Assembly (NCBI RefSeq): GCF_002113885.1
Contig: NW_018408465.1
Span: 3,371,898-3,435,897 of the forward strand
Source of the DNA: Mizuhopecten yessoensis
Lineage: Eukaryota
Direction: 5' to 3'
Length of the DNA stretch: 64,000 nucleotides
Within the stretch, counting starts at the first letter, position 1. Each line of letters begins with the position of its first letter. Shown in pieces: positions 12,215 to 64,000 of the stretch. A model generated the notes under the pieces. That model was not told where the DNA came from, did not search any database, and was given only the letters and a program-made list of their open reading frames with translations. The translations under genes were made by a program, and so were the position numbers.

Positions 12215-12941
12215 CGCTCTAGATACTACAGGCGTTATGCTCAGTCATACTCTCTGCACCCCTGTAATATGTCATAGCAAAATCGAGGGTTTGGTGTGCG
12301 CCGCCTTGTGGATGAGAAGAGAAGACTAGTTTAATTAATCCTTGAATGTTTACCAAAAGAATTTCGCGGGCGCGAAGCGGTAAAATTCATTGACTTTAAA
12401 GTCCGGTGTCATTCCTCTGTAATCTTAAGAAGACAGGTATATCAGCCTAGCGATTGGTCACTTTTTTTCTATTCGAGACCAATGAAATAGCTAGCCGTGC
12501 CCCTGACATATTCAAGGGGTGCAGAGCAGGGACGTAACCAGGACTATGAGTATGTGGAAGCNGGGGGGGGGGGGTACCCCCCGAGATTTTTTCGGAATCT
12601 GGAACCCATTCTGGTGCAGTTTGAGAATAAAATACTTATCATTTTCATATTTGGCTTGTAGTATTTTTTTTCAAAGGCGTAATAATTAGTTCCATATGAA
12701 CAAGGAACATTTTCTTTAAATAGTCAATAAAAGAAACAATATCAATGAGATAATGAATTCACTGAGGGCCCAGGATTATATGAGTTGTTAAAATTTATCA
12801 CATAAAGTTTATACAATGTGATCCTTGTTAAAAGTATACTTAAAAAAATTACGTGGAAGCCCGTGCGTCCGTGCGTACGCCTGGTTACGTCCCTGCAGAG
12901 AGCGGTTACAAGTGAGCGTAACCCCTTGAGGATCGAGGATG
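12215..12941. mobile_element. Mutator-like non-autonomous DNA transposon with a nested insertion
   Basis: 9-bp TSD TCTGAAAAC (12206-12214 and 12942-12950); homologous to 44783-45276. Confidence 0.8.
12527..12895. mobile_element. Nested TIR element (hAT-like CAGGG termini)
   Basis: TIR CAGGGACGTAACCAGG / CCTGGTTACGTCCCTG; 5-bp TSD CAGAG. Confidence 0.85.
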
Positions 12942-17937: not shown

Positions 17938-18030
17938 NNNNNNNNNNNNNNNNNNNNNNNNNNNNNNNNNNNNNNNNNNNNNNNNNNNNNNNNNNNNNNN
18001 NNNNNNNNNNNNNNNNNNNNNNNNNNNNNN

Positions 18031-40339: not shown

Positions 40340-43300
40340 CTGAAACAGTAACAACACATCAACCATTACTTTAGTGGTGAGCTTCACACAATGTATTATG
40401 GTGAAAAGTACACATGAAATTGGTTTTAATGTAACTTCAAATCTCAAGTTTTACGAGGACAACACATTCTCTATAATCTGAATTAATCTAACCCTTTCAT
40501 TTTCTAAGCAACAGTAATATTTTAGTGATATAGATGTTAACCCTTTCACCCCTATGTAACTTTAGTAGACTCTACCATGCATTGATATGGATGAGTCCAT
40601 TATGGTTTACAGTGGTGAAAGGGTTAAGGCATATGGCAATATGTACTAATGGACAGACTATTCAGGTCAAACATTAAAAGTATTGGTCATTACGATATAC
40701 CCATGTATACTACAATAGCATACCTCGTCCAGCAGCAGGTAGACAGACTCTCTGTTACGAATCATCTCCTTCTCGCTCTCCTGTCCAAGTCTGAGCAAAC
40801 TGGAGGATGCAAGCTGTGGATATAGAAATTATAATGTAAACCACATTGAAACTGAACAAGTGTGGATCTGCTAATATGTAGGAACTATTAAGATATCACT
40901 GAGCAATACTACGCAGGTAGTCTCTCGACTAGTTGATTTAACCTGAAGAAGTACAGATTTTGGGGTTAGGACACACTTAGATATAAACAGAGACAATTTT
41001 TTGACCTACCCCAGTAATATCTCGACTAAATGATTTAACCTGAAGAAGTACAGGTTTTGGAGTTAGGACACACTTAGATGTGAACAGAGACATTTTTTTT
41101 TTTTACCTGAAAAGCAATTCTAAGCATAAAAGCCTTTTATGAAGTTTGATATTGAGAACTGCAGTAGACTTACAGCTAAGAACTCCTGGAGGCGGTCGGC
41201 CACATCCCCCGGTCCATGGATAGAGAAGAGAGCCCCAGCCAGCTGGTTGATGGTTTTGGCGAGACAGTGGGTATTGTTCACATGTCCTGTTTCACAGTAA
41301 GACACAAAGATAAAGCCTACTTTGTTACATTACTCAACATATTTCTCTTTTGACACATTTTTTTTAAGTAGTCCAATTTCATAAATCAATAATGATTAGA
41401 ATTTATTCAATATCATAATGAATAGCTCAACTTTTTAAAAATATTGAAATAGCTTTATCTTACATCCCATGCAAGGGATCGTGCTCTAGGAGTACTTTCA
41501 GTAGACTATATAGGGAGAAGTGTACATTAACCATTTCACCCCTATGTAACTTTAGTAGACTCTACCGTGCATTGATCTGGATGAGTCCATTATGGTCTAC
41601 AGTGGTGAAAGGGTTAACTATCACATGACTTACCTTCCAAGGAGGCCTTGAACACGGACGTTTCCAGGCGGGCCAGCTTGGGGATGGACACAGCGATGAA
41701 GACCATCAATAAACACACAACCTCATACTCACTCTCCTTGTGTTCTACAGAATACAGTACAGTCACATGTTAGTAGTAATACACACAATTCTATTATCTC
41801 TTTCCTTTAATTCTACAAAACATCCTTTCAACATCTCAATAGTTTTAAAAACAGAAAACAAACATAGCATATCTCATTATTGGTCATACCTCAATTATAA
41901 TTCTATATTTGTCAACATTTTTTTTTGAGACTGGCACCAGATATAAATAGCCTTGAGTTTATTCCATTGGAAGTTGCTTTTATTTTTTGAGATAGTGTAC
42001 AATCCCTACAACTTTTTAGAAATCCTACCAGATTATAATATGCTTTGTCAATCTCCCCACAAAAACTATCATCTAAAAAAAGTAGAACAAAAAAATGCCT
42101 GAAAGTTTTTAGAAGTCAACATCTAATGAACTTATTTCAATAGTTACTTTATTCAAATTTCACTTTATCAATTCTTCGTTTTTTTAGAAATAAACATTTA
42201 ACTGTCATATACTCAGAGCTGCTTTAATAATTGAAAAAGGAGTTTAATGAGGTGGCATAAAAGTGGCATAATAGTGTATCAGGCCGTCATCATTCAACAT
42301 TCATCATACAATACACATTATATACATATTTCATACAGTAACAGTAAATATATCAACACTACATACTAAATATGTCAACGATACATACTAAACTAGATGT
42401 AGCACTGAGCAAATTCAATAAAACACTGCTATATGTTTCTCTATTGAATTTAAAGGAAAATACAAAAACTTTCTTCAGCATTCATTGGTGAGAAGGCACA
42501 TGTCCAAACAATGTAGTTGAAAAGATACAGAAATGAGACAGAATATTCCTTTTCCTGTTGAGTTAAGTGGATGTACCAGTAATTTAGGTTAATTATAGTT
42601 CATGCTTTTGTTTTTATATCTGTGACTGTCAGTATAATTACAGTGAAATAAGTAATCCTGTCTTAGGCTATATTATACCAGACTGTAATTACAATGTAAT
42701 AGGAGTTCATGCCTTAATGTCTGACTGTATGATTACATTGTAATAGTTCATGTCTTTATGTCTGACTATATGATTACATAATGTAATATTTCATGTCTTT
42801 ATGTCTGATTGTATGATTACATTGTAATAGTTCATGTCTTCATGTCTGACTGTATGATTACATTGTAATAATTCATGTCTTTATGTCTGACTGTATGATT
42901 ACATTGTAATAGTTCATGTCTTTTTGTCTAACTGTATGATTACATTGTAATAGTTCATGTCTTTATGTCTGACTGTATGATTACATAATGTAATATTTCA
43001 TGTCTTTATGTCTGATTGTATGATTACATTGTAATAGTTCATGTCTTTATGTCTGACTGTATGATTACATTGTAATAGGAGTTCATGTATTCATGTCTGA
43101 CTGTATGATTACATTGTAATAGGAGTTCATGTCTTCATGTCTGATTGTATGATTACATTGTAATAGTTCATGTCTTCATGTCTGACTGTATGATTACATT
43201 GTAATAGGAGTTCATGTCTTTATGTCTGACTGTATGATTACATTGTAATAGTTCATCATGTCTTTGACGTTTTATATCTGACAGTATACTTACAGTGAAA

Positions 43301-46300
43301 TTAGTGTTCATGTCTCTCACTATTTTTAAACTAGACTGTAATTATATTTACAGTACAACAGGGGTTCATGCCTTCATATCTGACTGTATGATTATATTGT
43401 CACAGGAGTTCATGCCTTGTTGTCTACAGTAGCAGTACAAACATGCTGCTCATGAGGTATTTCATACACTGCATGCCTGACTGAGCTGTGTGTATGATTG
43501 CTAAATCTGACTAGTCTGGGATGTACCGAGGGGTTTACCTTCAGAGATGTCGTCTGTCGAGTCCGACAAATTGAGTTGCCCTATCAGAAAAATCACACAC
43601 TTTACATGTACATGTTTAACTATAAATGATGAAAGTTTAGCTCAGTGTTTTTATATAGCCAGACTACTCTGGGTTATAAGAATGTGACCCAGTTTTATCA
43701 AATATATATGACATACAGATCAAACATTCCTATGATCATGTTCATTGATGAAATAAAATGGTGAATTAACTTCACTCCTTGATATAGGACGGACTAATTC
43801 ATGTAAAGATGATTGCCCTTTCATTCTTCCTCCATTAGTGTATGACGATGGACAATCACCATCCAACCTATGTTTATAGAGTTAAATAGTTACCACTCTT
43901 CATCTGTCGGAGGGCATTGATGAGGGTGGGATCCACGTTACAGGGTAGACCCCCAGCAGAGGCCATCTCGTTAACCACCTGTAATAACACACACAGTACA
44001 GATGAACTTCGTGCATAATTTCATATCCTGTCATAAACCCTTTCACCACTGTACACCATAATGGACTCATCCAGATCAATGTATGGTAGAGTCTACTTAA
44101 GTTACCTAGGGGTGAAAGGGTTAATGAAGAATGTTTAAACTAAGCAAAATGTTATACCAGTCATCAAAAAATTGGACACGAGGTTCAGCAGTTGTTTTTC
44201 TATGGTGAGTTTAATATTATTGTCAATAGTTTCTCCTAAATACAGTATAATGGGAAATTTTCGCCCAGTCAAACTTTTGCCCTACGTAGGTAAAATCTAT
44301 TTTTCATCTAAATTACGTTTGCCGTTTACATTTTATAACTACGTTTTCATGTTGTCTACTAACGTTTGCTGTATCAATAAATTCACCCGCAATGCAGAGG
44401 GCAATAAAGGTGAAAGTTTGTCTGTGGTGAAAGTTTCCCGGTATACAGTAACACTGTGAATTCTGTCTTAAAACAAAGAGATTGTATACTAAATATAAAC
44501 AAATTAAAAATATTGTCGCAAACATAAATTAACCAATTTCAGTTCTTATTTAAACCTTCCAATAATTAGTACTCCCGACACGCAGACGCTTACTGTCACC
44601 AACAACAGAAGGGGCAGCAAGCAACTACGGGCTGATACATACAAAAACTCAACTATATATACAGTAAAACCCAATCCTCAAACTCCAATACCCCTCATTT
44701 GTCGAACAGTTTGTTTGGTCCCGACCGAGTTTGATCAAATGTATTTGGGTTTGTATTGCAGAACATTCTACATAGACAACTGCGTCCTCGATATCCAGGG
44801 GTCACGCCCACTTTCACTCTCTACACCCCTGGAATATGTCATAGCAAAATCGAAGGCTCAATGTGCAGCACCTTGTGGATGAGACGAGAAGACGAGTTTG
44901 GTCCTTTGATGTACATCAAACGAATCTCGCGGTCACATAGTAATGCTCACTTTCACTCTCTACACCCCTGGAATATGTCATAGCAAAATCGAAGGCTCAA
45001 TGTGCAGCACCTTGTGGATGAGATGAGAAGACTATAGTTTGGTCCTTTGATGTACATCAAACGAATCTCGGGGTCACCTAACAGTAAAAAATGACAGGCT
45101 TTGAAGTGGGGCCTCGCTCCTTTGGAATCTTCAAAGGACAAGTACCAGCCTAGTGATTAGTCATTTTTTTTTACCTGACACCAATCAAATAGCTAGCCAT
45201 GTGCCTTCATTTTTGCTATGACATATTCCAATGTTTAGAGAGCGAAAGTGAGCGTAACCCCTGGATATCGAGGATGAGACAACTGATTTCAAAGACAAAT
45301 TTTCTTAAATTAGATTAAATTATCAGAAGCATAGTTTAAGCAGAATAATAGTTTTGCTGCTGTGTGAGAGATATCAGGCAGAGTAGATCTTCTGGTAAAC
45401 ACTGGTACAGTATACAGAAATTACACGCATGTTACAATCACATCTTGACACAGAATTTATAAAATTGGATTTATTTTTCAAGAAAATGTAACAAGCATAT
45501 GTGCAGCAGAAGGCAATATCAGCACTTCATTGGTTGTCTGAGGAAATCGAAAAAAAACCTCTACTCATACCAATTAACTACACTATATTTCAAAGAGATC
45601 TAAAAAGGTTATTGGAGGAAATACAATCATCTTGAAAAGAGTTTGAGTGAGAAGGAATAATTGCAAATTAGTGGGAGTAACAAAAAGGTTTGAGAAAATC
45701 ATTTTAGAACATACATAAATGAAAAATCTACACACATACTAACAACCCTGCATGCTTTGATCGAAATATATTTCAAGTAAAACAATAGATTATTAAACAA
45801 CATGCGTATTATTAAGTAGGTCTAAGATCTAATACATAATTAAATGTCTATTACGTTAATTCTAACAGATGTGACAGATATTAACGTCCAGTAGTTGTGA
45901 ACAACATCAACGAGTTGAGTTATACATGTAGCATGGTTCTGCTGCCTTTCTAGTAGCTCCTGTAGCACTTAATATTTGAGTTTTTACTTTGTAATTCAGA
46001 ACACAGCACATGTGAGACAAAAACACAAAACTGTTGAATGATTTTTACTGTTTTCTTCATTTTGTCAACAATCACGGTCGTACAAAGTTTGTTAATTAAG
46101 AGGTCTTACAGGATCTTATCAAGAGATATTATTCATATAGGGATTGAACGGCGTTTTTAAAAATGCTGTTCAACCCATATATTTACATTTTTATTAATGA
46201 ACAATTGTTTAATTTAATTTATTTATTCTTAAATAGTTCCTTTATTTATTGTGTTTTGTACATGCATCGTCCTTTAAACGACATTTGCAGAACAGCCCTA

Positions 46301-49300
46301 TTTATATAAAATTGGCGCCAATATGTAACCGTTGTCATTTGAGCGTTTGACGCAGGGGCATTCTCCATGTTAGCCGAAGCAAAGCAACAAGACTCTTATT
46401 GAACAAAGTTAATCTATGACGTCATAAGTAAACCACGTGTTACGTAACGAGAGTTTTTGCTTTCATACTCAAATGAAATGCATTTCTGCTGGTAATGTTC
46501 ATAAAATGGGTTGCAGCGCAAATGTAAACATAGAAAAGTCATAAAAGCTTTTATCAATGATAAATTTCTCTTCTGTACTACACCCTGGTTCTTATTCTCT
46601 CAAATATTCTTTTGTATACTCTGCATGGTCACAGACGTAATAACAGGTTTTCCTCATGCACAGAGATCAAGTAATTATCCAAGCAAGAAAAAATGTTTAA
46701 TGCTCACAATGTTATACAGTTTTACCCTTATTTCGTATTATCATAGCTGGTAGCTGTATTTGCTGCCCCTAACTACATATAACAAGTATTTGATAGAAGA
46801 ATTCAGAGCCAGCTGTCAAAATGCTCAATAAAGCAGCAAAAAAAATGTTGCTGAAACAGATGATAGGGAGGGCAGCAGCTATAAAAGGTCCGATGATCAA
46901 TGGCTGTAAAAACTGAAGAGCTCTAGGAAGGCAGATAACTCAGTCACTAACAACATTTAGGCAACAGTATTCACACAACATGACCTCACTTCCTGGTATC
47001 CCCACCTCCCACAGGCAATTGCTGGTTTACACACAGTGGGAAAAGAGCTCATCTTATGTAACACAGAACCTTTTTGGTCAACTTTAAAAAAAATATCTTT
47101 CTTTTTTTACCTTGCAAATAATTTTAACATTATTGTTTTTAGTTTAGAAATTGAATTTTCAAATACTTTTTTGACAGAAATAGTTTTTATTTCATCAGTA
47201 AGGAAGAAAAGATGTGACCAAGTGGAAGTGTGGGAAGTGTGACACAAGAAAATGGCGACAATACGGAGGACAAACCTGCTGTTTCATTGAAGAATACTGT
47301 CACATGGAGGAAAAACAGATATAAACATGACTGTGTTGTAGAAACTGTAGACATATATGAACATATGCTAGTGTCTCGTAACTACCAGATATAACGCTTC
47401 TTACGATAGCGTAACACTTCTTACAATAGCGTAACACTTCTTATGATAGCGTAACACTTCTTACGATAGCGTAACACTTCTTACAACAGAATAGTACACT
47501 TATCTAACACTTCTAATGATAGCGTAACTCTTCTTAAGACTGAATAGTACACTTATCTAACACTTCTTACGACAGAATAGTACACTTATCTAACACTTCT
47601 AATGATAGCGTAACACTTCTTAAGATAGAATAGTACACTTATCTAACTCTTCTAATGATAGCGTAACACTTCTTAAGATAGAATAGTACACTTATCTAAC
47701 TCTTCTAATGATAGCGTAACACTTCTTACAATAGCGTAACACTTCTTATGATAGCGTAACCCTTCTTACGATAGCGTAACACTTCTTACAACAGAATAGT
47801 ACACTTATCTAACAATTCTGATGATAGCGTAACACTTCTTACAACAGAATAGTACACTTATCCAACACTTCTAATGATAGCGTAACACTTCTTAAGACAG
47901 AATAGTACACTTATCTAACACTTCTAATGATAGCGTAACACTTCTTACAACAGAATAGTACACTTATCTAACACTTCTAATGATAGCGTAACACTTCTTA
48001 AGACAGAATAGTACACTTATCTAACACTTCTAATGATAGCGTAACACTTCTTAAGACAGAATAGTACACTTATCTAACACTTCTAATGATAGCGTAACAC
48101 TTCTTAAGACAGAATAGTACACTTATCTAACACTTCTAATGATAGCGTAACACTTCTTAAGACAGAATAGTACACTTATCTAACACTTCTAATGATAGCG
48201 TAACACTTCTTAAGACAGAATAGTACACTTATCTAACACTTCTAATGATAGCGTAACACTTCTTAAGACAGAATAGTACACTTATCTAACACTTCTAATG
48301 ATAGCGTAACACTTCTTAAGACAGAATAGTACACTTATCTAACACTTCTAATGATAGCGTAACACTTCTTAAGACAGAATAGTACACTTATCTAACACTT
48401 CTAATGATAGCGTAACACTTCTTAAGACAGAATAGTACACTTATCTAACACTTCTAATGATAGCGTAACACTTCTTAAGACAGAATAGTACACTTATCTA
48501 ACACTTCTAATGATAGCGTAACACTTCTTAAGACAGAATAGTACACTTATCTAACACTTCTAATGATAGCGTAACACTTCTTAAGACAGAATAGTACACT
48601 TATCTAACACTTCTAATGATAGCGTAACACTTCTTAAGACAGAATAGTACACTTATCTAACACTTCTAATGATAGCGTAACACTTCTTAAGACAGAATAG
48701 TACACTTATCTAACACTTCTAATGATAGCGTAACACTTCTTAAGACAGAATAGTACACTTATCTAACACTTCTAATGATAGCGTAACACTTCTTAAGACA
48801 GAATAGTACACTTATCTAACACTTCTAATGATAGCGTAACACTTCTTACGACAGAATAGTACACTTATCTAACACTTCTAATGATAGCGTAACACTTCTT
48901 AAGACAGAATAGTACACTTATCTAACACTTCTAATGATAGCGTAACACTTCTTAAGACAGAATAGTACACTTATCTAACACTTCTAATGATAGCGTAACA
49001 CTTCTTACGACAGAATAGTACACTTATCTAACACTTCTAATGATAGCGTAACACTTCTTAAGACAGAATAGTACACTTATCTAACACTTCTAATGATAGC
49101 GTAACACTTCTTACGACAGAATAGTACACTTATCTAACACTTCTAATGATAGCGTAACACTTCTTAAGACAGAATAGTACACTTATCTAACACTTCTAAT
49201 GATAGCGTAACACTTCTTAAGACAGAATAGTACACTTATCTAACACTTCTAATGATAGCGTAACACTTCTTAAGACAGAATAGTACACTTATCTAACACT

Positions 49301-52300
49301 TCTAATGATAGCGTAACACTTCTTAAGACAGAATAGTACACTTATCTAACACTTCTAATGATAGCGTAACACTTCTTAAGACAGAATAGTACACTTATCT
49401 AACACTTCTAATGATAGCGTAACACTTCTTAAGACAGAATAGTACACTTATCTAACACTTCTAATGATAGCGTAACACTTCTTAAGACAGAATAGTACAC
49501 TTATCTAACACTTCTAATGATAGCGTAACACTTCTTAAGACAGAATAGTACACTTATCTAACACTTCTAATGATAGCGTAACACTTCTTAAGACAGAATA
49601 GTACACTTATCTAACACTTCTAATGATAGCGTAACACTTCTTAAGACAGAATAGTACACTTATCTAACACTTCTAATGATAGCGTAACACTTCTTAAGAC
49701 AGAATAGTACACTTATCTAACACTTCTAATGATAGCGTAACACTTCTTAAGACAGAATAGTACACTTATCTAACACTTCTAATGATAGCGTAACACTTCT
49801 TAAGACAGAATAGTACACTTATCTAACACTTCTAATGATAGCGTAACACTTCTTAAGACAGAATAGTACACTTATCTAACACTTCTAATGATAGCGTAAC
49901 ACTTCTTAAGACAGAATAGTACACTTATCTAACACTTCTAATGATAGCGTAACACTTCTTAAGACAGAATAGTACACTTATCTAACACTTCTAATGATAG
50001 CGTAACACTTCTTAAGACAGAATAGTACACTTATCTAACACTTCTAATGATAGCGTAACACTTCTTAAGACAGAATAGTACACTTATCTAACACTTCTAA
50101 TGATAGCGTAACACTTCTTAAGACAGAATAGTACACTTATCTAACACTTCTAATGATAGCGTAACACTTCTTAAGACAGAATAGTACACTTATCTAACAC
50201 TTCTAATGATAGCGTAACACTTCTTAAGACAGAATAGTACACTTACCTAACACTTCTAATGATAGCGTAACACTTCTTAAGACAGAATAGTACACTTACC
50301 TAACACTTCTAATGATAGCATAACGCTTCTTACAACAGAATAGTACACTTACCTAACACTTCTAATGATAGCGTAACACTTCTTACAACAGAATAGTACA
50401 CTTATCTAACACTTCTAATGATAGCATAACACTTCTTACAACAGAATAGTACACTTATCTAACACTTCTAATGATAGCATTGTAAACTGATCTATCACTG
50501 ATTATCAATTACATTTCAAGATTTCTTGCCGCTGATCTTGTCATCATATCCTGTCAACCCTTCCCCTTACCTATCAATGACCTTGACCATTACAAAATTG
50601 ACCTCACCTTGTCACCTTTCAGTTGCAATCTGTGATATTTCATTATGCCAGGTGGCATTTGAGAATTGTAAGAGTCTTATCTGTAGCGTTATTATGCATT
50701 TAAGCTTATATATGAAATCTAGTCATGACTTAAAGTTGAGATTTTCGATTTGTTTCCAATAAATAAATCAGAGTAAAAGTGAACCTTTTACATAGTATTA
50801 ATCTTTAAGAAAAATTAAGATGATGAAATATAATGTAAAAAAGCTATCAGTAAAATAGCTGACATATTGTTTATTAACTCATTCACCCCTGAAATTTTGC
50901 AATGCACTGTTCCAATCTTTGAATTGGAAGAGTTCAAATGTGTGTTCAGGGGTGAATGAGTATTGCTGGTACCAAAGTGAACAGGAATCAAAAGGTTATC
51001 CTGTTACAGGTTTCCTGTAATAGTTTATATCTCAAACTTAACTGTGACATATAATCTTATTGTAAGCCAACAGAAACTGTGATGTGTTTTTTTATTAACC
51101 CTTTCACCACTGTAGACCATAATGGACTCGTCCAGATCAATGTATGGTAGAGTCTACTAAAGTTACCTAGGGGTGAACGGGTTAAAGATGCTTGATTATA
51201 AGTGGCAACTGGAGATCAATTTTGCTGTAGCAGCCATAACATACATGTTTGTTTACATGTCCGTGTCCGGACAGTACCGTCATGACCAGTAATGTGTAAG
51301 GCTAGCACTTCATCAACATATTGCACCATTCGTTAACATTTGATCTTGTTTACCTTGTCTAATACGATTTAAGACACACAAAAAGATATTGATTGGTGAA
51401 ACCTATGTGCTGACAATGCAAAACTTCAAACAAAACTACAGATATCTAAATAAATGTTTAAAACATTGTAACTTACTGAAATGAAAACAATTAACAGTTG
51501 AGAAATGACATTCTAAATTTCTCAAAACTCATGTAATTAACATCTTGGTGAACATAAAACAAGCTGTGTTAAAGTAGTGAAGTTTTATACAGTACATTAT
51601 TAAACTCATTAAGTTTTACACCTTTCTTTATAGTCTACAAACATCATTTGGTAAAGAAAGTGTGTTTCAACACTGTACAATTCTTTCTTAATAATGAATA
51701 CTAGCAATTCACATCCAGGCCACTGAAGCAACATGCTTGGGCATTCAGTCCAATAACATTGTATGTCTGTCTACACCATTAGGCTCCTTAACCCTGTCAT
51801 CACTGTAGACCATAATGGACTCATCCAGATCAAAGCAAGGTAGAGTCTACTAAAGTTGCATAGGGGTGTAAGGGTTAAGAATGTCCCTTATCGTTTCATA
51901 TTCTGGTCATCAATGGCTACTGACCAGTCTTGCTGTCAGGTGTCAAGTCAATCCACTATCATCATGACCTGGAAGCATTACTCTATACATGTGTGTGCTA
52001 ATTAACATAGTCACAAAATAACACACAGATGGTTTAATTTGTGTGGTCTAGATAGGATTTTACATACAAGCTAACTAAACAGGTAAAAAAACGTTTACCA
52101 AAAATTTCAAAATTTCAAATTATTTGTAAAAGTACACATACTTAGTTATGACACTAATTATTTTTTCTGTATATGTTTATCAACCAAAATCCATGACATG
52201 CTACCTTATCTTAGATATTATATCAGATTCAAACTTTAACATATTGGTAATTATGCTAAATGAAGGTGAAATAATACTTCATATGATGGTATATAATGTA

Positions 52301-54107
52301 GATACAATGTATATGATATACTGTAGCCACTTACATAGGAATGTAATGCACTAATCTGTGAGGACAACAATATTAAGAACTTAAACATTATCATCACTTC
52401 CTTTCTCTTCAATACTTATAATAGACATGTTAAAATATCATTACTTTTGCAACCTTTAGGAATGTCTTAAACAAAAAGGTACCTTGATTTGCCCAATTTT
52501 GAAATTTTAATCTTTGCAAATTCATCAACCTCAGATCAACTATTAACAATAAATCCTTTCATACAAATATATACCTGTCTATGATATCTAACATATACAT
52601 CTATGTCTAAATACAATTCTAACAAGAGGTATAATGAGCCTGTAGGTTTGTTGATTTCGCATGAAATATGGAATACTGTCACTTCTTGGTCGGAAGAATA
52701 ATTTTAAGGTTAAATGTCTGGAACTACCTATGTTAACCTTTGAGCCGTATGTGACGGTCTACATCCCAACAGGCACATACTCACTTACAAAATCTGACAT
52801 ATACCCTGTTCTATGTCTATGAAAGTGAATAAAGGGCCACAACTCTGTATATAATGGGGCAGGAAACAGGATTTCAATATGCAACACTCCATTGTCCAAG
52901 GAGGTACTTACATAAGATATTAGGTAATTGCAGGTGCCAGAAAGAGATATATGTCCTGCACAAAGTGACACAGACAGACTGACGGAAGGACAAACGGAAG
53001 AATGAATGGATTGCAGACCTGTAGACCAGTCTGGTAGTAACAGTGGGGAACAAATAACCATTTTTTAGAGGTGATTCATGTTTCTCCTGCCTAACACAGT
53101 CAAGTGTGTGCCCAAGCTGTCTACTCTACTGCCAGTCTAACAAGCACATGTAACATGCCCGGTTCTCTCGAAGTTCACATCCTCCACACAAAATAAAATT
53201 ACTTCATACATATTCTCACACCCTTCTGCCATCCTGTGTTTCATACGTATTATTCTCAAAACCAATTTGTGTTATATTTCAATTCAACCTCATGAAGACG
53301 GTATGATTTAAATGAGCTGAAATTCTCTAAATATAAGATCCATACACTATAGTTCATTGTTGTTAGCTATTAACATGTAACCATGGTAACGAGTAGCACT
53401 GAACTTACCTTCGAGTCTTTGGTGTTGGGGACAAAATGTTGAAGGTCCTTGACGGATGCCATTAGAAATGGAATGCGATCCTCTAACACCTGCATATGTA
53501 TAAAGAGAACCCTATTCAAACGAAACACTCAAGGCATCATTTTAAACCAAATGGTGCATGAATTTGAATCATTCTGCTAGACAGAATACCATATTCTGAC
53601 CAAACATTGCCAAATCATTTCATCAGGAATAAATAGATTTTTGGATGACAGAAATTTAAAAATTTACACCAGAGAACAACTTACCAAAGATTTGTGTTCA
53701 GACCTAATATTTAAAATTGAAGGTAGTCAATGTGTGGGTACGCTTACATTTATGATGACCAATGTCCGTTACATCCTAGGTCATGACATTTGACTCGTTT
53801 ACTTTCAGTAAATGTATTTAAAGTTGAAAGTACACATGTATGACCTATTTAACAGTACACAAAATTTGATTGGTCCATCCCGTAGGTTCATACATAAGTT
53901 TGTTTTCTCTTAAGTTCAAAGGTCATCCTTTTAATCTGTTGCATGAAAACATCTGTACAGACTCAAAACCTAAGGTCAACCAGTTTGAACTGTGACCCCT
54001 TAAACCATGCGACCTTATACATACAGCAAGTAGGGCTTCTTGGGCGAGGGAGCGGAAAGACAGCAGTACACCTATCATAGTCATCCGCATCAGTACACTG
54101 TCAGCAT
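40226..54107 (-). CDS. NCKAP1: Nck-associated protein 1 (Nap1/Hem/Kette; WAVE regulatory complex), 3' part; continues beyond the right edge
   Basis: Exons 54025-54107, 53409-53489, 43894-43978, 41634-41744, 41174-41286, 40724-40813 and 40226-40339 splice in frame: [118 protein letters not shown]. Confidence 0.96.
40724..40813 (-). CDS. NCKAP1: NCKAP1 exon
   Basis: [30 protein letters not shown]. Confidence 0.95.
41174..41286 (-). CDS. NCKAP1: NCKAP1 exon
   Basis: [38 protein letters not shown]. Confidence 0.95.
41634..41744 (-). CDS. NCKAP1: NCKAP1 exon
   Basis: [37 protein letters not shown]. Confidence 0.95.
42700..43410. repeat. 41/44-bp intronic tandem repeat
   Basis: Unit TCATGTCTTTATGTCTGACTGTATGATTACATTGTAATAG(GAG)T. 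Confidence 0.92.
43539..43580 (-). CDS. NCKAP1: Candidate NCKAP1 42-nt cassette exon
   Basis: tttttctgatag|GG CAA CTC AAT TTG TCG GAC TCG ACA GAC GAC ATC TCT GAA G|gtaaac; phase 1-1 matches the intron. Confidence 0.6.
43894..43978 (-). CDS. NCKAP1: NCKAP1 exon
   Basis: [28 protein letters not shown]. Confidence 0.95.
44241..44450. mobile_element. TA-flanked MITE (Tc1/mariner-like)
   Basis: TACAGTATAATGGGAAATTTTCGCC...GGTGAAAGTTTCCCGGTATACAGTA imperfect TIRs. Confidence 0.6.
44783..45276. mobile_element. Mutator-like non-autonomous element with long TIRs and an internal ~140-bp tandem duplication
   Basis: CGTCCTCGATATCCAGGGGTCACG / CGTAACCCCTGGATATCGAGGATG; 9-bp TSD AGACAACTG (44774-44782 and 45277-45285). 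Confidence 0.88.
47276..47296 (-). CDS. NCKAP1: Candidate NCKAP1 21-nt microexon (YSSMKQQ)
   Basis: ctgtttttcctccatgtgacag|TAT TCT TCA ATG AAA CAG CAG|gtttgt; phase 0-0 matches the intron. Confidence 0.45.
47390..50480. repeat. 53-bp highly homogeneous intronic satellite (~3.1 kb) built on a 20-bp subrepeat
   Basis: Unit GATAGCGTAACACTTCTTAAGACAGAATAGTACACTTATCTAACACTTCTAAT; pure 20-mer run GATAGCGTAACACTTCTTAC at the left end. Confidence 0.97.
50874..50964. mobile_element. piggyBac-like MITE family B (TTAA; TIR CTCATTCACCCCT); also 59937-60023 and 62854-62944
   Basis: TTAA-CTCATTCACCCCT...AGGGGTGAATG(A/G)G-(TTAA). Confidence 0.8.
53409..53489 (-). CDS. NCKAP1: NCKAP1 exon
   Basis: [27 protein letters not shown]. 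Confidence 0.93.
54025..54107 (-). CDS. NCKAP1: NCKAP1 exon
   Basis: [27 protein letters not shown]. Confidence 0.95.
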
Positions 54108-56709
54108 CTGTAACAAGGGCACATAACTCTAGTATACAAGAATAGTAATACAGGTTATTAAAGAAACTGAATAACACAACAAAATTTACAGAGATGAGTG
54201 ATGACACAATAAAATTTACAGAGATGAGTGATGACACAATAAGTTTTTTAATGTTATTCAAAAGGAAATCAACTTAAAGGAGGTATTTATTTTTCTTAGT
54301 TTACATTAAAAATTAATTGTCCTGAGCTTTAACTTTGGTTTGTAATAAAACATTCCAACAGGATTTTAATGCTAAAAACTTTGTTCAATCAAATCGTTCA
54401 ATTTAAAAACAAAATAAATCTGCTTTCTTGCCATCAGAACATGTTGAATGTCACATGTATAAAGGTGAAGTTGTCGATATCAGTAGTTTGGAAAATATCT
54501 CCAATGTATCATCTGATGCTTTTAATAGGTTGATAAAAGGGTATTACATCTGTGTAGAGATCATCTAGTGTTTGGGCATTCTCATAAATATTTTACACAT
54601 GCTTCATTTTCTTGGGGAAAACTTTTTGTATACATGCCACACAAAATAATTAAATATATAGTTGATGGATCACAGCATGCTGGGTTTGGAAGCTTCAACT
54701 AAAAGGTTTTCTTTCTTTTCAGAGAAAAACAATTGACCATAGAAGACAGTTGTACCTAGCGAATACAGTATACAGATATTAACGGTAAAACCATATTGTG
54801 AATGATAAATTCTGGAAAAAACTTCTATAATAAAGATTGATTTTCAAGTGTCTATTCGTTAAAATTGTTACTTCAAGCTAAAGTAACTTTAATATATTAA
54901 AGAAATATTGCTAAAATGAAAATACGTTCATATTTTCAATAGTCTATGAAGTTTTTAGAGTGTTGTGGTTGTCTGGTCACCGGCTACAGACAGGGGTAAA
55001 ACAGGAAGTGACATCACAAGGCATGCACGAGGAAACAGACACCAGTCAGATCAAGTCTACTACCTTAATGACACACCAATTTGTCAAATCTAAAACAAGC
55101 AACTTGTTCTTTTTTAAATGATTATGAAAATTTCACAGAATCAATGTTTTGTCTTTATGTGTCATTAAGTAATTCAATGGTGCAGGAAAGTAGACCCCAC
55201 AATGTTTTTCAAGAATATCTATATTTGAATGTCAGAATTGGAATATCAATATTTGGGATGAAGTGAGACAGTTATTAGTCTCTGTATCAGCCACAACTGA
55301 ATAAACCATACGACTATGAAATCAAATGATACATTACTTATATATCAACAAGGATGTGATTACTTGTTAGATTAGAGTCAACATAGCATTTAAGGAGTTG
55401 ATTGACAAGTCTTTTTCAAGCAAATCAAGCGCCATAACTCTTTTAATATCGATAACAAAAATATATGATCAGTCAATTAGGTCACACATGCAATTGCTCT
55501 TGTGACAGATGTATGCAAATATCTATTAAAATCATTGCATAACTGGAAAACCAGTGCAAACAAAATTCTTTCTACAGACAGACAGATGTCCTACGATTTT
55601 CACACTGAAACTAAAATCTGATGTAAAAACAAACGAAGAATTGCTTGGAACAGCCAATTAATCGAGGGCATATTAGTAAAGAATCTAGGAATTATATAGC
55701 GTGAGGTCTGCTTTTGAAGTCACTGTATCTTAATAATGAAATTGCAGATATAATGCTCCTGTGTAAACATATTTTGATCCATGATTCTAATGACTACAGT
55801 TTATTACATTTTTGCCAGAGAAATATTGGATTCTATCATCTTGATAAAACTGATATTTTTCACACTGTGACTAATATCAAAAGTATCACTTTTTGGTATT
55901 GACCAATCATAACAGTATCTTCTATTCGCTGCATTCAAAGGCAACTATTTTTTGTTCAGATTCAAATAAAGCGACACTAGAATAAGTGGTTGCTATGGTA
56001 AATGTGTGGTACACACACTTAAGTATTTACATAAATATACAATTAATAACATTTATATAAGCGATCAATTCAAAGAAAATAGCAGAAAAAGTCGAAATTG
56101 CACTGAGTTATCCCATTCAAAATGGTGCACAGCCTTGTTGTCAAGCGTGACGTTATTAGAATATGCTGCGCACTCGTGAAAAATATCAAAATATTAGCCA
56201 CACTCGTGAAATATATTTGTTATTACAGAAGGCACTGTTAAATATCTTATCCTCTAATCCTTTTTGTCTAGCCCTTCCCTCCAACATTTCACTGGTTGCT
56301 ATTTTGACTTTATTGTACTTTAAAAGGTACAAAACAGAGTTAATGCAGCACTAATCAGAAATCACACACCAGTCCCTTACCATCATCTTACCATCATCGA
56401 ATCAAAACAGTGAAAACTTAGTACATGTACATGTATTTTCTCACCAACAAGACTACACGCAGGTACAGATTTGCTTTTAGTTTTTCCTCCATGAAATAGC
56501 GTACAAAGACTGTCCACTTATGATGGAGCCACTCCTGACCAAGTGGTCAATTCAATGTGACACATCACTTAGTTGTCATAGCCTGGTCAATGTAGTATGA
56601 TAGCCCACACTGTCACATTATTCAGACAACTGGCTAAGCACAGGTGCCAAGAGACAAAATGTCAAAATACAATGTAGGACAGAATTCTTGAGAGGTGCAA
56701 GACAGATAA

Positions 56710-58535
56710 ATAACCAGCTATAGTACCATATGTATGTCATAATTAAGTCAGTTTCCATAGTAACTAGCTATTGTACGATGTGTAAGAGGCTAAATGTATA
56801 TCATAATTAAGTCAGTTTCCATGGTAACCAGCTATAGTACCATGTGTAAGTGGCTATATGTATATCATAATTAAGTAAGTGTCCATGGTAACCAGCTATA
56901 TAGTACGGTTTGTAAGTTGCTATATGTATATCATAATTAAGTAAGTTTCCATGGTAACCAGCTATATAGTACGGTTTGTAAGTTGCTATATGTATATCAT
57001 AATTAAGTAAGTTTCCATGGTAACCAGCTATAGTACCGTTTGTAAGTGGCTATGTGTATGTCATAATAAAGTCAGTTTCCATAGTAACTAGCTATTTTAC
57101 GATGTGTAAGAGGCTAAATGTATATCATAATAAAGAGTTTCCATAGTAACCAGCTATTGTACCATATGTAAGTGGTTATATGTATATCATAATAAAGTCA
57201 GTTTCCATAGTAACCAGCTATTGTACCGTGTGTAAGTGGCTATATGCACAGTAAATATTCAGTTTCTGAGGTAACTAGCTACAGTACCGTGCATAAGAGG
57301 AATATGTACAATATACAGTCAGTTTCCATAGTAACCAGCTATAGTACCATGCATAAGAGGATTATGTACAGTATATAGTCAGTTTCCATAGTAACCAGCT
57401 ATAGTACCATGCATAAGAGAATTATGTACAGTATATAGTCAGTTTCCATAGTAACCAGCTATTGTACCATATGTAAGTGGTTATATGTATATCATAATAA
57501 AGTCAGTTTCCATAATAACCAGCTATAGTACCATACGTAAAAGGATATATGTACAGTATATAGTCAGTTTCCAAGGTTAACAAGATAAGTACTAACATGT
57601 ATAAGAATTATGCTAATATGTATTATATATAAAGTCTGTTTCCATAGTAACCAGCTTTGATTTCAGGTGTAAGAGACTATGTGTATATCATTTATTCAGT
57701 TTCCAAGGTAGCAAGCTATAGAACTACCATTTGTACTATATAGTCTGTTTCCATAGTAACCGTATGCAGTATCAGGTGTAAAAAGCTGTATGTATAACGT
57801 ATCCAGTCAGTTCCACACTTCCATATTTGGTAACTGAGTGATCACGTGATTTGACACAGTCTTGTAAGTGGTCAGTGCACTGCCAAGTCTTTGAAGTGAG
57901 TGGACGTTAGTTGGAGTATATACCACGTGTAAGAAGCTATATACATATACATAACATATAAAGTCAGTTTCGAAGGTAACCAGTTATGATATGAGGTGAA
58001 GGAAGCTATATGTATTACATAAAGTTGTAGTAGTAACCAGTTGTGGTATTAGGTGTAACAGGTACATGTGTAGTACCAGGTGTAACAGGTATATGTTTAT
58101 CATTTTAAGTCAGTTTCCATGGTTACCAGTTACATGTGTAGTATCAGGTGTAACAGTTATATGTATATCACTTCAAGTCAGTTTCCATGGTTACTAGTTA
58201 CATGTGTAGTATCCGGTGTAGCAGTTATACGTATATCATTTTAAGTCAGTTTCCATGGTTACCAGTTACATGTGTAGTATCAGGTGTAGCAGTTATATGT
58301 ATATCATTATAAGTCAGTTTCCATGGTTACCAGTTACATGTGTAGTACCAGGTGTAAGCAGTTATATGACCGCCAAAGACAGTTTTCCTGACCACTAGCT
58401 CTAGTACCAGGTGCAAAAAGCTTTACATATATCATACAGTCAGCTTCCATGGCCCCAGATAAAGTTCCAGATATGGGAAGCAATATAGATATATCATTCA
58501 ATGTCAGTTTCCATGGCAACCATATATAATACCAG
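56710..58535. repeat. ~62-66-bp diverged satellite with GTTTCCAT(A/G)GTAAC in most units
   Basis: Recurrent AAGTCAGTTTCCATAGTAACCAGCTATAGTACC. Confidence 0.9.
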
Positions 58536-58637
58536 GTTTATACAACATTCAACCAACAACAGGATCTACATCACTAGGGTGGCATATCTGTGACAAGCAT
58601 TCCAAAGATGCAGATTTGTTCATGTTCACAAACTTAC

Positions 58638-58658
58638 CTGTAGCAGTTTGTTTTGAAT
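58638..58658 (-). CDS. NCKAP1: Candidate NCKAP1 21-nt microexon (xSKQTAT)
   Basis: tttcttttag|AT TCA AAA CAA ACT GCT ACA G|gtaagt; phase 1-1 matches the intron. Confidence 0.55.
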
Positions 58659-60680
58659 CTAAAAGAAATTGGTACCATACATGAACAATCACAGTTTGTT
58701 GAATGACTTTTCATTGACTTACAGTGATAATTGTACCGATTCAAGCAAGAATGATTATATAAGTGTCTAATGTTTAAATGATGATATTGACAGGTAGGTT
58801 ACATTGGCTAAATATGTATAAATTTACTATACATCTCACTATGCACATCTTCTATCTATAACTCATGTTTGTACCAAACAAATGTTACTTCCTGTACAGA
58901 TTTATATGACACAGATATTGATGTAATAAATACACAATACAATGTACTGTGGTAAAGAGTAACTGATTCAAACAACAGGCATACACATTATATAATTAAA
59001 TATCTTATAAATAAACGTATCAAGGACAGAATACCAGCTATAATCCACTTCTAACATGTACTATTATGATGGCGAGCTACGTTCATATAAATGTAATACA
59101 TGTACTATGTGAGACTTAAAGAATCTGTCATATACAATGGAGGTGGATAGATAATTCCTCCCAAGGGGATCATTAATTGGAGTAAAACCTGAGGCTCTGT
59201 GTATGACCCACGAGGGAGGAATTATCTTTCCTACAACTATTACAAATGAAAGGGTATTTTTTTCTCTCATATCCTCTATCAAAATCAAAATATTGAACCT
59301 TCTCAACATTCACTCGTCGTTGTAGTTTTCAAAAAAACATCTTTGTGATTTTTCATGGAAAAATAATGAATTCTATAAATCCATAAACTGCACTATTACC
59401 CTCCCAGAAAAACTGTTTCCCTGAGAATTCAGATTAACTAGCTATTCACCTTGGTGCTTTTCATACAGCTATTTGTGTAGTTAGTTTGGGCATGTTTGAA
59501 CATCATAAGTATTTTCATTTAATTTACATAAAGACAAATAAACATCTTGATAAAAAAAACATTTTTTTCGAGCAATTATATGTTTTTTATAAAATATTTC
59601 TTCAATACAGCTCAATCCCCATCATGCAATCAATTCCCTTATGTAAATGGATTAAGAAACAACGGCTATCCGCAGTTACTCCCCTTTGTTGTTGTATTGA
59701 ACCTTGTGATCATTTCATCACTAGTGAATATATAGGTATCTTACATGGCAAGGTTTACCTTACAGGATATGAGAGAAAAACACCTGTCTAAACCGAATAC
59801 CTTGGGCTGAATCTGTCTATAAGATCAGTTCTGTTCTCACAGGCTATACAGATAACCTCACTACATTACCGTCAGCATTCCTTTGAGATTTCAGTGTTAT
59901 CAATAGGTTTGGCAAGGAAGACTTTTAAGGAATGTTTTAACTCATTCACCCCTGAAATTTCATAATGAACTATTCTAACCTTTGAATTGGATGAGTTCAA
60001 ATGTGTCTTTAGGGGTGAATGTCACATTTAAAAGAAAAGGGGACCATGAAACAAGTAGTGACGGTTGAAACAAAAGACAATATAGTGAGGTTTTATTGTA
60101 TATATAAAATTTCCTCAATGGAGGTCTGTTGTACATAAGTTTCCAGATACCCCTGGTTCGGTTTAGACAGGAAATATCATATATCATTAACTTTCATTAT
60201 TTATAAAAACATTTTGCTCAAAATAATTCAAAAATGTAAAACAGGGCTGCAAAATAAAACTCAAAAATGCCAATGAAGAAAGTTCAGTTTCTTTGACAGA
60301 ACAAGACAACTTAATAACACCATCCCAGCATTCCATTTCTGAAAATTGTCATTATAAATTAACTGATTAAGTATTGTTACTTGTCAAGAAATGAGAGAAA
60401 GTCCACCTACGGCCTCGTCCAGTGTAGGCAAATATCATGCACCAAGCATTCCAAAACAGGTAAAAATGGCTGATACATGTTACTCTTATACCCTATACTC
60501 TGGATAAAATATTGAAACAGAATCCTCTCATCTATTTTTTGAGTAAGTTTTAACAAGTAAAGATTTTTCTAATATGAATCCTTGAGACAAACTTTTAAGT
60601 ATTCAAGAAATTTATCAAAATATAACCTTTATATACAACAATTATGAAATAATTTATTTCAACTTATATTAATCATTCTT

Positions 60681-60859
60681 GTTAGCCCGAATGTTAGCGC
60701 GTGGGAGATCTTAGTGTGGGAGGAAACTGGAGTACCTGTAGAAAACCCATGTGGTCAGGCAGGTGACCTCAGACCTTTTCACTTCTGACCGGAGAATCAA
60801 AACCCCAACCGCCGTGGTGAAATGAAAGTTCGCTATCCACTGCGTCACCCAACCACCCG
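60681..60859 (-). mobile_element. tRNA-derived SINE with V-domain-like core
   Basis: Minus strand: tRNA-like head, then GGGTTTTCTACAGGTACTCCAGTTTCCTCCCACA. Confidence 0.75.
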
Positions 60860-61599
60860 ATTATTACAACATCATTATTGTCAGTTATCTGCCATGAGAG
60901 AAAGTTTAGTTTTGAAGAAGACTATAAATATCCGGAAAATGGTTTACTTTGTGTCTTTGTACTTTTCAAATACTCTTCCACATTTTTTTTAAAGTGACTA
61001 CAGATGTCATTTTAAGGAAATTGAGAATTTAGAAGTTGAAAATGTGGAAGATTCCAAGCTGATAGAAAACAGATGATGTCTTGATTCCTGAACAAGCAAA
61101 TCATCTGGTTAACTATGGAGATAATTACAGAATTAAATACCATGCAAATAAAAAAGGAAAAAAATTACAGACTTAAAAGTAAGAACTCAAGTTCCATCCT
61201 AACAGGAATCAAGGACACAGAGAACAAAGTTTGTTGTGGTTCATCAAAGTATATTTTGACCGCAGTTTCTTATATTTTCATTCACGAAACCTTCAACGGA
61301 ACATTTGACGTGACAAAGCAATAATTTCCCCCGGAATTCATTCACTTATTAACTTGTTTCGCATGATTTTTTGGAATAAATGTTTATAAATTCCTGTTGT
61401 AAACCTTGATTCCTGTTTCCTTGTAAAATAATTTCAAGCATTGCAATATTGACATAAAACATTCTTCGTGAACCTCTAGTTGTCATGGTAACAACAACCA
61501 AGCAATGTATTTGATGCAAAAGAAAACGAATGGAAACATTCCGATGAAAACCCAAATCTCTAGGTAGTATGCTGATTACTGATCAACTGAAAAGCTTAC

Positions 61600-61617
61600 T
61601 TGCAGCTGTCTTGGGTT
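61600..61617 (-). CDS. NCKAP1: Candidate NCKAP1 18-nt microexon (xPKTAA)
   Basis: ttttattccactcacttag|AA CCC AAG ACA GCT GCA A|gtaagc; phase 1-1. Confidence 0.45.
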
Positions 61618-63439
61618 CTAAGTGAGTGGAATAAAACTAATGTTAGTATTCAGTGTCACCATCCACAGCTGTAAAACAAACTAGAATCTACAACGGTAAT
61701 CTAATGTCATTCAAATTTTAATGTCTGAAAAATAAGCTTGAATTGACTACTCTTAAGCTGATCACTCAAAAATAAAAATCGTGAAGGGAAGCTACATACC
61801 ATACCAAAAATGTTTATTTACACATTACCAGCAATATCACGAACCATTATGGAAACTGTTTGTATTTCTTGTGAATCTCCGACAATTCAGGTGCTATTTT
61901 TATTGTCAACACTAACATTATCTTTCCTTTGTCATCTCAAGGTGTAAAGTTAAGTATAAGGTAAAGAGTACCATCAAGTCAGAATATTTCATTATCATTT
62001 ACACATCTATATATATATTCTAGATATAAATCTCGTCTTGTGATGCCTTTTACCGATTTTCAAATTTGAATATTTAAAAACTAACATAAAAAGCAAGAGA
62101 TAAATTGCAGGACTGAAATTTAAGACACATCCGCTGCAATTTGCAACTCCTACATTTCATCAATATTGCTATCAAGGAATTGTCAATGCATAGAATCAAA
62201 ATGAAAGATGAATACCTTGCCAAAGGAAGTAAATCGTAAGTTTTATCTTCTATCTATAAGGGAGAATACTCAAAGTAGAAAAAGAACAAAATGAATGGGG
62301 TTTTTTTGGCAATCGAAACAGGTGCATTGGTACCCTTTACCGTAAATAAAAGCTGCATGGGACGGATGGAAACGATGATGTGACGAGGGTCTGCCCCCAA
62401 GCTGTACACCAAACATCAATGTACCCTGACTTATCAAACTTACGATAGATCTTTGTCATTAGCTTTTTATTGAGCCACAGCCCTGGTCTAAACGGGTCCC
62501 TCTTTGGATTATTTGGTTTTGCTAAACCAATGAAATTCTTGGAAATATTACCTTTTATAACCTTTTATACAGTCTACATTATATACAAATTTTCATTTCA
62601 AAACTAATGGCAGACATCTGCATGGTGACATACGTATATACAGTTTCTACAAACATGGAACCATCAATAACAGTTTTTAAAATTTGATAAAATAGATATT
62701 TAATCAAACATTTAGAGTGTAAGAATATAAGAATATCATTTGAATATTTAAGATACAAATACAATGGTTTTAACAAATACAGTGAAATGTTGTTAATTTG
62801 AATATGTACATTTATTACCTATCTTTGGATGGTAACACAACATACATCTGTTTTTAACTCATTCACCCCTACATTTTTAAAGTGGACTTGCCCAGTCTTT
62901 CATTTGGTAAGGTTCAAGTGTGACTTTAGGGGTGAATGGGTTAATGAAACACGAAAACTGTTGTAACTTCGGGGTTCCAATAAACTGGTTTAAAATAACA
63001 TTAATATAAGTTTACCTCAAAAATGTCATTTTCATATAAAACATCAAATATTACCTGCAACGTTTCGGTAAAATTTATTTGAACTGACAACATTTCAGTG
63101 CACATACAATGATACACGACTTCTTATTACAAAGACAAACATGAACAACAACCTTTCATAAATAAAGTGTCACTATTATACAACATCCATTCAACATTCC
63201 AGATAAATAATCGTATCTGACAAAAACATAAAAATATATTCAAATTTGTAGCCGGATTCTAATGTCAGTATCAATGCTACTTTCCTAAATGAATACAGGC
63301 AGCTGGAGAGTGGATGATACGAGATCTTAGAAACAATCCCTGATTCAAAAGTGATCATAGCAGATAATAGTGAGAAAAGAGAGATTCCGATACAGTAAGT
63401 GTAGACTGAAATAGTCTAAGTAGAAGATGTTTGTCGTTG

Positions 63440-64000
63440 CTACGGAGTAACCTATGACATGTGATAGAATGTGATTGGGAGATGAAGCTTTTCATCTGTA
63501 CTCAGAAACCTGTGACATACTACACAATATGTGTGGGGTGTGACAGAGTGTGATTTGGGGATGATTTGTATCATCTGTATTCAGAAACCTGTGACATACT
63601 ACACAATAACTGAGGGGTGTGAAAGAGTGTGATTTGGGGATGATGTGTATCATCTGTACTGAGAAACCTGTGACATACCACACAATATGTGTGGGGTGAG
63701 ATAGAGTGTGATTGGGAGCCGATGTGTATCATCTGTATTCAGATACCTGTGACATACTACACATTATGTGTGGGATGTGAGAGGGGGATAATGTTCATCA
63801 TCTAGGCCCAGAAACCTGTGACATACTCCACAATAAGTGTGGGGTGTGTTAGAGTGTGATTGGGAGATGATGTGTATCATCTGTATTCAGAACCCTGTGA
63901 CATACTACACAATATGTGCGGGGTGTGATAGAGTGAGATTGGGAGACGATGTGTTTCATCTGTACTCAGAAACCTGTGACATACTACACAATATGTGTTG
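63440..64000. repeat. 79-bp tandem repeat running off the window end
   Basis: TCATCTGTA(C/T)TCAGAAACCTGTGACATACTACACAATATGTG period 79 (63492, 63571...). Confidence 0.92.

Follow-up and report, generated by a model that had tools for sequence, protein, structure and literature searches.

The 64,000-nucleotide (nt) stretch of the Mizuhopecten yessoensis genome analysed here (assembly GCF_002113885.1, contig NW_018408465.1, positions 3,371,898 to 3,435,897 of the forward strand; in the following the window) contains the 3' third of the NCKAP1/Hem (Nap1) gene on the minus strand. Four short segments in three large introns of this gene, designated c1 to c4, are very probably true alternatively spliced exons, which possess canonical splice sites, keep the reading frame and are each represented by forms with and without the segment in transcripts or gene models. 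A preliminary description had predicted them as an undescribed cluster of frame-preserving exons. Their reality was borne out by RefSeq isoforms, by splice joints of c3 and c4 in RNA and by conservation; they are, however, not undescribed, since c2, c3 and c4 are already contained in RefSeq isoforms of M. yessoensis and c1 in those of two other scallops. The exons are thus real and largely annotated, and the new results are the age of two of them across phyla and the mapping of the inserts onto the protein structure. Branched actin assembly is driven by the WAVE complex, of which NCKAP1 is an essential subunit; NCKAP1 is also a human autism gene.

Segments and host introns

The Nckap1 profile PF09735 gave 20 exon-wise matches above its curated cut-off, all on the minus strand of one contig and spanning profile positions 1-1118; the last matches were located at window positions 41748-40247. 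The translations of the window exons match human NCKAP1 (chain 3P8C_B). All exons described below lie on the minus strand.

The microexon c1 (61600-61617, 18 nt, phase 1) is flanked by the acceptor ..cacttag and the donor gtaagc and encodes K-PKTAA, in which the K is completed with the upstream base; the last base of c1 opens the next codon. The microexon c2 (58638-58658, 21 nt, phase 1) has the acceptor ..cttttag and the donor gtaagt and encodes N-SKQTAT, and its inclusion changes the junction codon from N to D. The third microexon, c3 (47276-47296, 21 nt, phase 0), encodes YSSMKQQ between the acceptor ..gtgacag and the weak donor gtttgt. Finally, c4 (43539-43580, 42 nt, phase 1; acceptor ..ctgatag, donor gtaaac) encodes 14 residues, which are acidic and rich in Ser/Thr. 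The junction codons N, K, N and D are the same as in the annotated isoforms, and the phases of the host introns are 1, 1, 0 and 1 for c1, c2, c3 and c4, respectively. With lengths of 18 nt (c1) and 21 nt (c2, c3 and a candidate fifth segment, c5, described below), four of the segments fall within the limit of 27 nt for microexons, and c4 (42 nt) is a short cassette exon outside the microexon size class (3-27 nt). Positions, strand, AG/GT flanks, lengths, phases and absence of stop codons, as given in the preliminary description for c1 to c4, were all found again when checked on the sequence.

The intron hosting c1 and c2 (site 1) has a length of 10.9 kilobases (kb), of which 9.9 kb lie in the window, and is in phase 1. 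The intron hosting c3 and c5 (site 2) comprises 9.43 kb and is in phase 0; that of c4 (site 3) comprises 2.15 kb and is in phase 1. The neighbouring introns measure 0.34-0.54 kb, and the hosts are therefore indeed much larger than their neighbours, as had been stated. Upstream of site 1, a constitutive exon ends at the window-equivalent position 64995, just past the window edge, with ..KKLN plus A and the donor gtgagt. Exon A (54025-54107; 27-residue peptide), the downstream partner of c1 and c2, corresponds to residues 898-927 of human NCKAP1. Exon B (53409-53489) encodes a 27-residue peptide and is the upstream partner of c5 and c3. Exon C (43894-43978), encoding a 28-residue peptide plus G, has c3 upstream and c4 downstream, and exon D (41634-41744; 37-residue peptide plus G) is the downstream partner of c4.

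How often such segments occur was estimated by a scan of the three host introns for the pattern AG-N(9-60, multiple of 3)-GT, free of stop codons in the phase of the host. It yielded 245 + 420 + 77 = 742 candidates, and the bare AG..GT in-frame pattern showed no excess over chance. A crude filter demanding a pyrimidine tract and a good donor retained only one of the four segments, namely c1. With 742 segments of the same pattern, exon status must rest on RNA, annotation and conservation and not on the motif.

Annotated isoforms and splice joints in RNA

Full-length NCKAP1/Hem proteins of many molluscs, several of which are represented by numerous RefSeq isoforms, were obtained by word searches of the database, which were seeded with a Trichinella model and then with Mytilus isoform X3; the window exons were searched singly, and the full-length comparisons used database proteins. 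The scallop cluster consists of RefSeq isoforms of M. yessoensis, Pecten maximus and Argopecten irradians. The M. yessoensis isoforms X3, X5 and X7 match the peptides of exons A, B and C letter for letter. Isoform X3 (XP_021368134.1) contains c2 (NSKQTATD), c3 and c4, isoform X5 contains c3 and c4 without c2, and isoform X7 contains c4 without c2 and c3, so that c4 occurs in all three M. yessoensis isoforms examined. Annotation of c1 was found in P. maximus (X1, X5, X8, X10 and X17) and Argopecten (X2, X4, X8 and X10). Each time c2 follows, and the joint form reads KPKTAA-NSKQTAT-D in the isoforms of both genera. This joint inclusion shows that the two segments are not mutually exclusive, contrary to the suggestion in the preliminary description; c2 also occurs without c1 (isoforms X3 and X4). 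For both c1 and c2, included and skipped forms are thus present among the annotated isoforms; c4 is present in some and skipped in other Pecten and Argopecten isoforms.

Splice joints were sought by comparing window positions 41500-47400 with Logan contigs of four runs from the same organism. The introns at the joints read CT..AC on the plus strand, which corresponds to GT..AG on the minus strand. The c4-skipping joint 41744->43894, which connects exon D with exon C, was detected in all four runs. The c4-inclusion joints 41744->43539 and 43578(+T)->43893 were detected in run X14, a declared RNA library, and in run X1. The odd offset of the latter joint is due to a synonymous C>T variant at position 43579; a second variant within c4 (position 43552) is synonymous as well. 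Exon C is linked to c3 by the joint 43976(+2)->47274 in run X24, on a spliced contig of 2448 nt that also skips c4. For c3, the inclusion joint thus comes from RNA contigs and the skipped form from RefSeq isoform X7. These joints show the use of c3 and c4 in RNA and, for c4, true alternative splicing within a single sample.

Conservation among scallops and homologous exons in other phyla

When the P. maximus locus was aligned to the window, the introns aligned only in islands, which make up about 8-11% of their length. Each of c1, c2 and c3 is located inside such an island. The DNA of c1 is identical in P. maximus at 18 of 18 positions, with flanks about 93% identical, and c2 is identical at 21 of 21 positions, likewise with conserved flanks. 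For c3, 20 of 21 positions are identical and the single change is synonymous. The splice sites of these three exons are identical in the two scallops, and about 100 nt of their flanks are 85-95% identical. In comparison to c1-c3, c4 and its flanks are more diverged; c4 evolves fast.

Orthologous introns of related molluscs, in which the segments had been proposed to be sought, confirmed c1-c3 in P. maximus and Mytilus, and c3 in the bivalve with the assembly GCA_029721355.1. At site 1, Mytilus possesses RPKQSA (18 nt) and NTKNTSS (21 nt); the c1-type exon of Mytilus edulis is an 18-nt phase-1 exon (L013:47548-47565). Oysters have RP[IV]KQ.G and N[TA]KNQ[VM]S at this site, and gastropods have SHKNAPS or PYKNAPC, with an additional upstream piece in Patella and Babylonia. 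In the chelicerates Tachypleus, Argiope and Dermacentor, RPKMAQ or RPRMAQ was found. In the spider Argiope, this peptide is encoded by a separate 18-nt phase-1 exon (L011:48592-48609) with AG/GTAAG flanks at the same intron position, which has 12 of 18 bases in common with c1. The c2 type was found only in molluscs.

At site 2, seven residues of the pattern x-x-S-[LIM]-[KR]-x-[QK] occur in mussels, oysters, unionids, heterodonts and gastropods, and also in the brachiopod Lingula and the nemertean Tubulanus. More divergent inserts of seven residues are present in the centipede Strigamia (LEHIRQQ) and the crab Eriocheir (IENIKLQ). The Mytilus exon encodes HSSMKQQ and has the same weak donor, GTTTGT, as c3 of the scallop. 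In the intron of the bivalve GCA_029721355.1 that is orthologous to the c3 intron, FSTMKQQ is encoded with AG/GT flanks (L009:7758-7778). Cassettes at site 3, the position of c4, were found only in scallops, oysters and this bivalve. Its gene model P0001, which was found by a search of protein representatives with a single window exon, carries 34 extra residues (a 102-nt cassette) exactly between exons C and D.

In some loci the exons were not found. The locus of GCA_029721355.1 showed no c1- or c2-like exon in the 3.1 kb of the c1/c2 intron that it covers, and no c5-like exon. The site-1 intron of the hemichordate Ptychodera (560 nt) contains no c1-like exon, and exons B and C form a single exon in this species. 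The B-C intron of Argiope (0.5 kb) contains no c3-like exon, and c1-type and c3-type inserts are missing from the insect isoforms examined. The recurrence of length, phase and intron position in other protostome phyla indicates that the c1 and c3 types are old.

Positions of the inserts in the protein

An AlphaFold2 model of residues 790-1168 of P. maximus isoform X1 reached a mean predicted local distance difference test (pLDDT) value of 80 and a predicted template modelling (pTM) score of 0.83. It superposes on the Nap1 chains 7USE_B, 3P8C_B and 7USC_B of the WAVE regulatory complex with template modelling (TM) scores of 0.79-0.81. In the model, c1 and c2 (6 + 7 residues) correspond to residues 121-133, which are all predicted as coil between the helices 109-120 and 134-166. 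The seven residues of c3 (189-195) lie at the N-terminal end of helix 187-203, where the confidence is low. The 14 residues of c4 (224-237) extend across the coil 226-235, and the pLDDT is below 50 at residues 226-232. According to the HMMER alignment, the equivalent positions of human NCKAP1 are near residues 898/899 for c1 and c2, near 957 for c3 and near 986-995 for c4. The insertion sites are therefore predicted to be loops or loop-helix junctions of the C-terminal domain. None of the inserts is present in human NCKAP1 in the solved structures, which is in agreement with the expectation that they are absent from the human protein. No ligand site was described for the C-terminal loops of Nap1 in the few structure papers on the WAVE regulatory complex that were searched.

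Interpretation of the alternative exons

As cassettes that keep the frame, the exons lengthen three loops or loop-helix junctions of the protein. Of these, c1 and c2 are independent cassettes, which can be used together and extend one and the same inter-helix loop. According to the model, c3 lengthens the start of the next-but-one helix, and c4 lengthens a disordered acidic loop. By composition, c1-c3 add Lys, Ser and Thr, and c4 adds an acidic Ser/Thr cluster with CK2-like sites. The inserts might thereby retune a presumably exposed surface of the WAVE complex by partner contact or phosphorylation while the fold remains unchanged. Trans-acting factors may set the inclusion for each cell type, which the weak donor of c3 and the conserved flanks would make possible.

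Several points weigh against this reading of the four segments. In M. yessoensis, c1 is absent from X3, X5 and X7, the three isoforms examined. Support for c2 consists of a RefSeq model and conservation. RefSeq isoforms are computed (Gnomon) models, which may list rare exon combinations, and the RNA joints come from assembled contigs and not from raw reads, so that they carry no inclusion levels, strands or tissue labels. Furthermore, no UGC motif occurs within 45 nt upstream of c1-c5.

One alternative is that the segments are chance pseudo-exons, i.e. splice-like motifs which happen to be in frame in long introns, and the abundance of such motifs in these introns would be in agreement with it. 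This explanation is already refuted for c2-c4, whose peptides RefSeq isoforms of M. yessoensis contain without any change, and the joints of c3 and c4 in RNA contigs speak against it as well. Taking also into account the perfect conservation of c1 and c2 in Pecten and the homologous exons in other phyla, its probability is negligible. Scarcely more probable is that c1 and c2 represent a duplicated pair of mutually exclusive exons. Their peptides are similar (K-T-A-A versus K-Q-T-A-T), and both exons are in phase 1 and lie in one intron; sequences of 18-21 nt are, however, too short to decide on duplication. The isoforms of P. maximus and Argopecten in which both are included, the use of c2 alone in X3 and X4, and the chelicerate genes, which have the c1 type without the c2 type, argue against exclusive use.

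A more substantial objection, although also an unlikely one, is that the exons are real and their use reflects unregulated combinatorial splicing, with no tissue programme or separate function, and that the many isoforms are an enumeration by the annotation pipeline. The isoform numbers, at least 20 in Pecten and at least 42 in Crassostrea gigas, would fit this explanation, as would the co-occurrence of included and skipped forms of c4 in the same runs, the lack of an upstream UGC, the fast evolution of c4 and the fact that no paper on regulation was found. It does not readily account for the conservation at the base level of c1-c3 and of roughly 100 nt of the adjoining intron in different scallop genera, for the persistence of the c1 and c3 types across phyla, or for the weak GTTTGT donor common to the c3 exons of scallop and mussel. 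Conservation of exon and flanks at the base level, persistence across phyla and retention of a weak donor are the usual marks of regulated exons.

Beyond the reality of the alternative exons, a broader proposal can be put forward tentatively. In the C-terminal loops of NCKAP1/Hem, the alternative microexons of the c1 and c3 types might form an ancient pair, which predates the split of molluscs and arthropods and has persisted for over half a billion years. The hemichordate and human genes examined would either have lost this pair or never have acquired it. The pair could act as a regulated, hitherto unstudied switch of the WAVE complex, to which bivalves would have added c2, c5 and the acidic c4 at the same sites.

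These observations provide a set of conserved alternative exons in the C-terminal domain of NCKAP1 of protostomes, with insertion points placed on solved human structures. The exons represent defined natural variants of a surface of the WAVE complex. For genome annotation the results carry smaller weight, because most of the exons are already contained in RefSeq models.

Further features of the host introns

Besides c3, the intron between exons B and C contains c5 (52335-52355, minus strand), a candidate 21-nt microexon in phase 0 with the flanks cctcacag and gtaagt, which would encode ISALHSY. It lies inside an island conserved in P. maximus, where the peptide reads ISALHYC and three of the five differences are synonymous. 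A similar peptide, MSGLEFC, is encoded by an annotated exon of Argopecten and takes the place of YSSMKQQ in isoforms X2 and X8 of that scallop; apart from Argopecten, no c5-like peptide was found in the scallop isoforms examined. Mytilus has an exon encoding MKTVVNK at the same relative position. Judged by these sequences, c5 is probably an alternative partner of c3.

At site 1 of Mytilus edulis two further 21-nt options were observed, namely an extension of the c2-type exon by an alternative downstream donor (GKWPYCT, L013:50281-50322) and a separate exon encoding EFSSLVQ (53164-53184). No equivalents of either were found in the scallop window.

Two further single-copy islands are conserved in P. 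maximus. The island at 46810-47015 (minus strand, 206 nt, 84% identical) is located 260-490 nt downstream of c3 and showed no match in Rfam; it may be a splicing regulatory element. The island at 62399-62538 (86% identical) is located about 0.8 kb upstream of c1 and contains an exon-like segment (62444-62521, minus strand), in which 78 nt in phase 1 without stop codon (TKPNNPKRDPFRPGLWLNKKLMTKIY) are flanked by ttag and gtaagt. The 3' half of this segment is fully conserved at the protein level in comparison to P. maximus. It was found in none of 342 database proteins and not in the mussel, spider and hemichordate loci, and it might represent a cassette missing from the annotation or an element that controls splicing. 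A search of window positions 40000-64000 against Rfam gave no match.

Much of the length of the large introns is made up of minisatellite arrays. A 53-nt unit repeated 55 times (2.9 kb) occupies positions 47392-50499, just upstream of c3. Other arrays are found at 42681-43256, 56728-57761, 58059-58368 and 63460-63998, with units of 41 nt (13 copies), 64 nt (16 copies), 68 nt (4.5 copies) and 79 nt (7 copies). The introns of P. maximus carry different arrays, and the minisatellites are thus lineage-specific. In all four runs the summed contig depth was very high (up to about 2x10^5) at 41527-41617, 44061-44257 and 44652-45439, and many loose contig ends occurred at 41617 and 45276. These stretches are high-copy repeats in the NCKAP1 introns, probably transposon fragments, one of which follows directly after the donor of exon D. 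Runs of N are present at 12562 and 17938-18030, away from the region of the microexons.

In P. maximus, the true exon D is immediately preceded by a tandem array with 54 copies of a 47-nt unit (L010:69623-72072). The units repeat the 5' end of this exon (EHKESEYE..), and isoform X17 (1020 amino acids, ..EYETFCLFII) appears to terminate in one of the copies. No such array of exon D copies was found at the equivalent place in the M. yessoensis window.

Comparison with known systems

Conserved alternative microexons in cytoskeletal regulators are a well-known kind of feature. The same exons as in the window are present in the RefSeq entries annotated as membrane-associated protein Hem-like (XP_021368134.1, XP_021368136.1 and XP_021368138.1 of M. 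yessoensis, XP_033752887.1 of P. maximus, and those of Argopecten). These entries are computed models, which come without description, tissue data or a comparison across phyla, and in a literature search no paper on C-terminal microexons of NCKAP1/Hem or on microexons of molluscs was found.

The SRRM3/4 (eMIC) programme of vertebrates and Drosophila likewise comprises frame-preserving exons of at most 27 nt with conserved flanks in cytoskeletal regulators. The microexons of this programme typically have an upstream UGC, whereas the NCKAP1 exons of the scallop do not. In Mytilus, no UGC occurs within 25 nt upstream of the c1-, c2- and c3-type exons, and the only case is the c1-type exon of the spider Argiope, with a UGC at position -13. 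A link to the SRRM/eMIC neural programme is therefore not supported by this feature. The main text of the eMIC paper does not mention NCKAP1/Hem (PMC8797185).

A further known counterpart lies in the human gene itself. Exon 2 of human NCKAP1 is an 18-bp neuronal microexon, the inclusion of which is lower in the cortex in autism (PMC10842930). It is located near the N-terminus, whereas the scallop exons lie in the C-terminal domain, where the human protein has no insert. In gene family, size class, preservation of the frame and alternative inclusion, the human exon and those of the scallop are alike.

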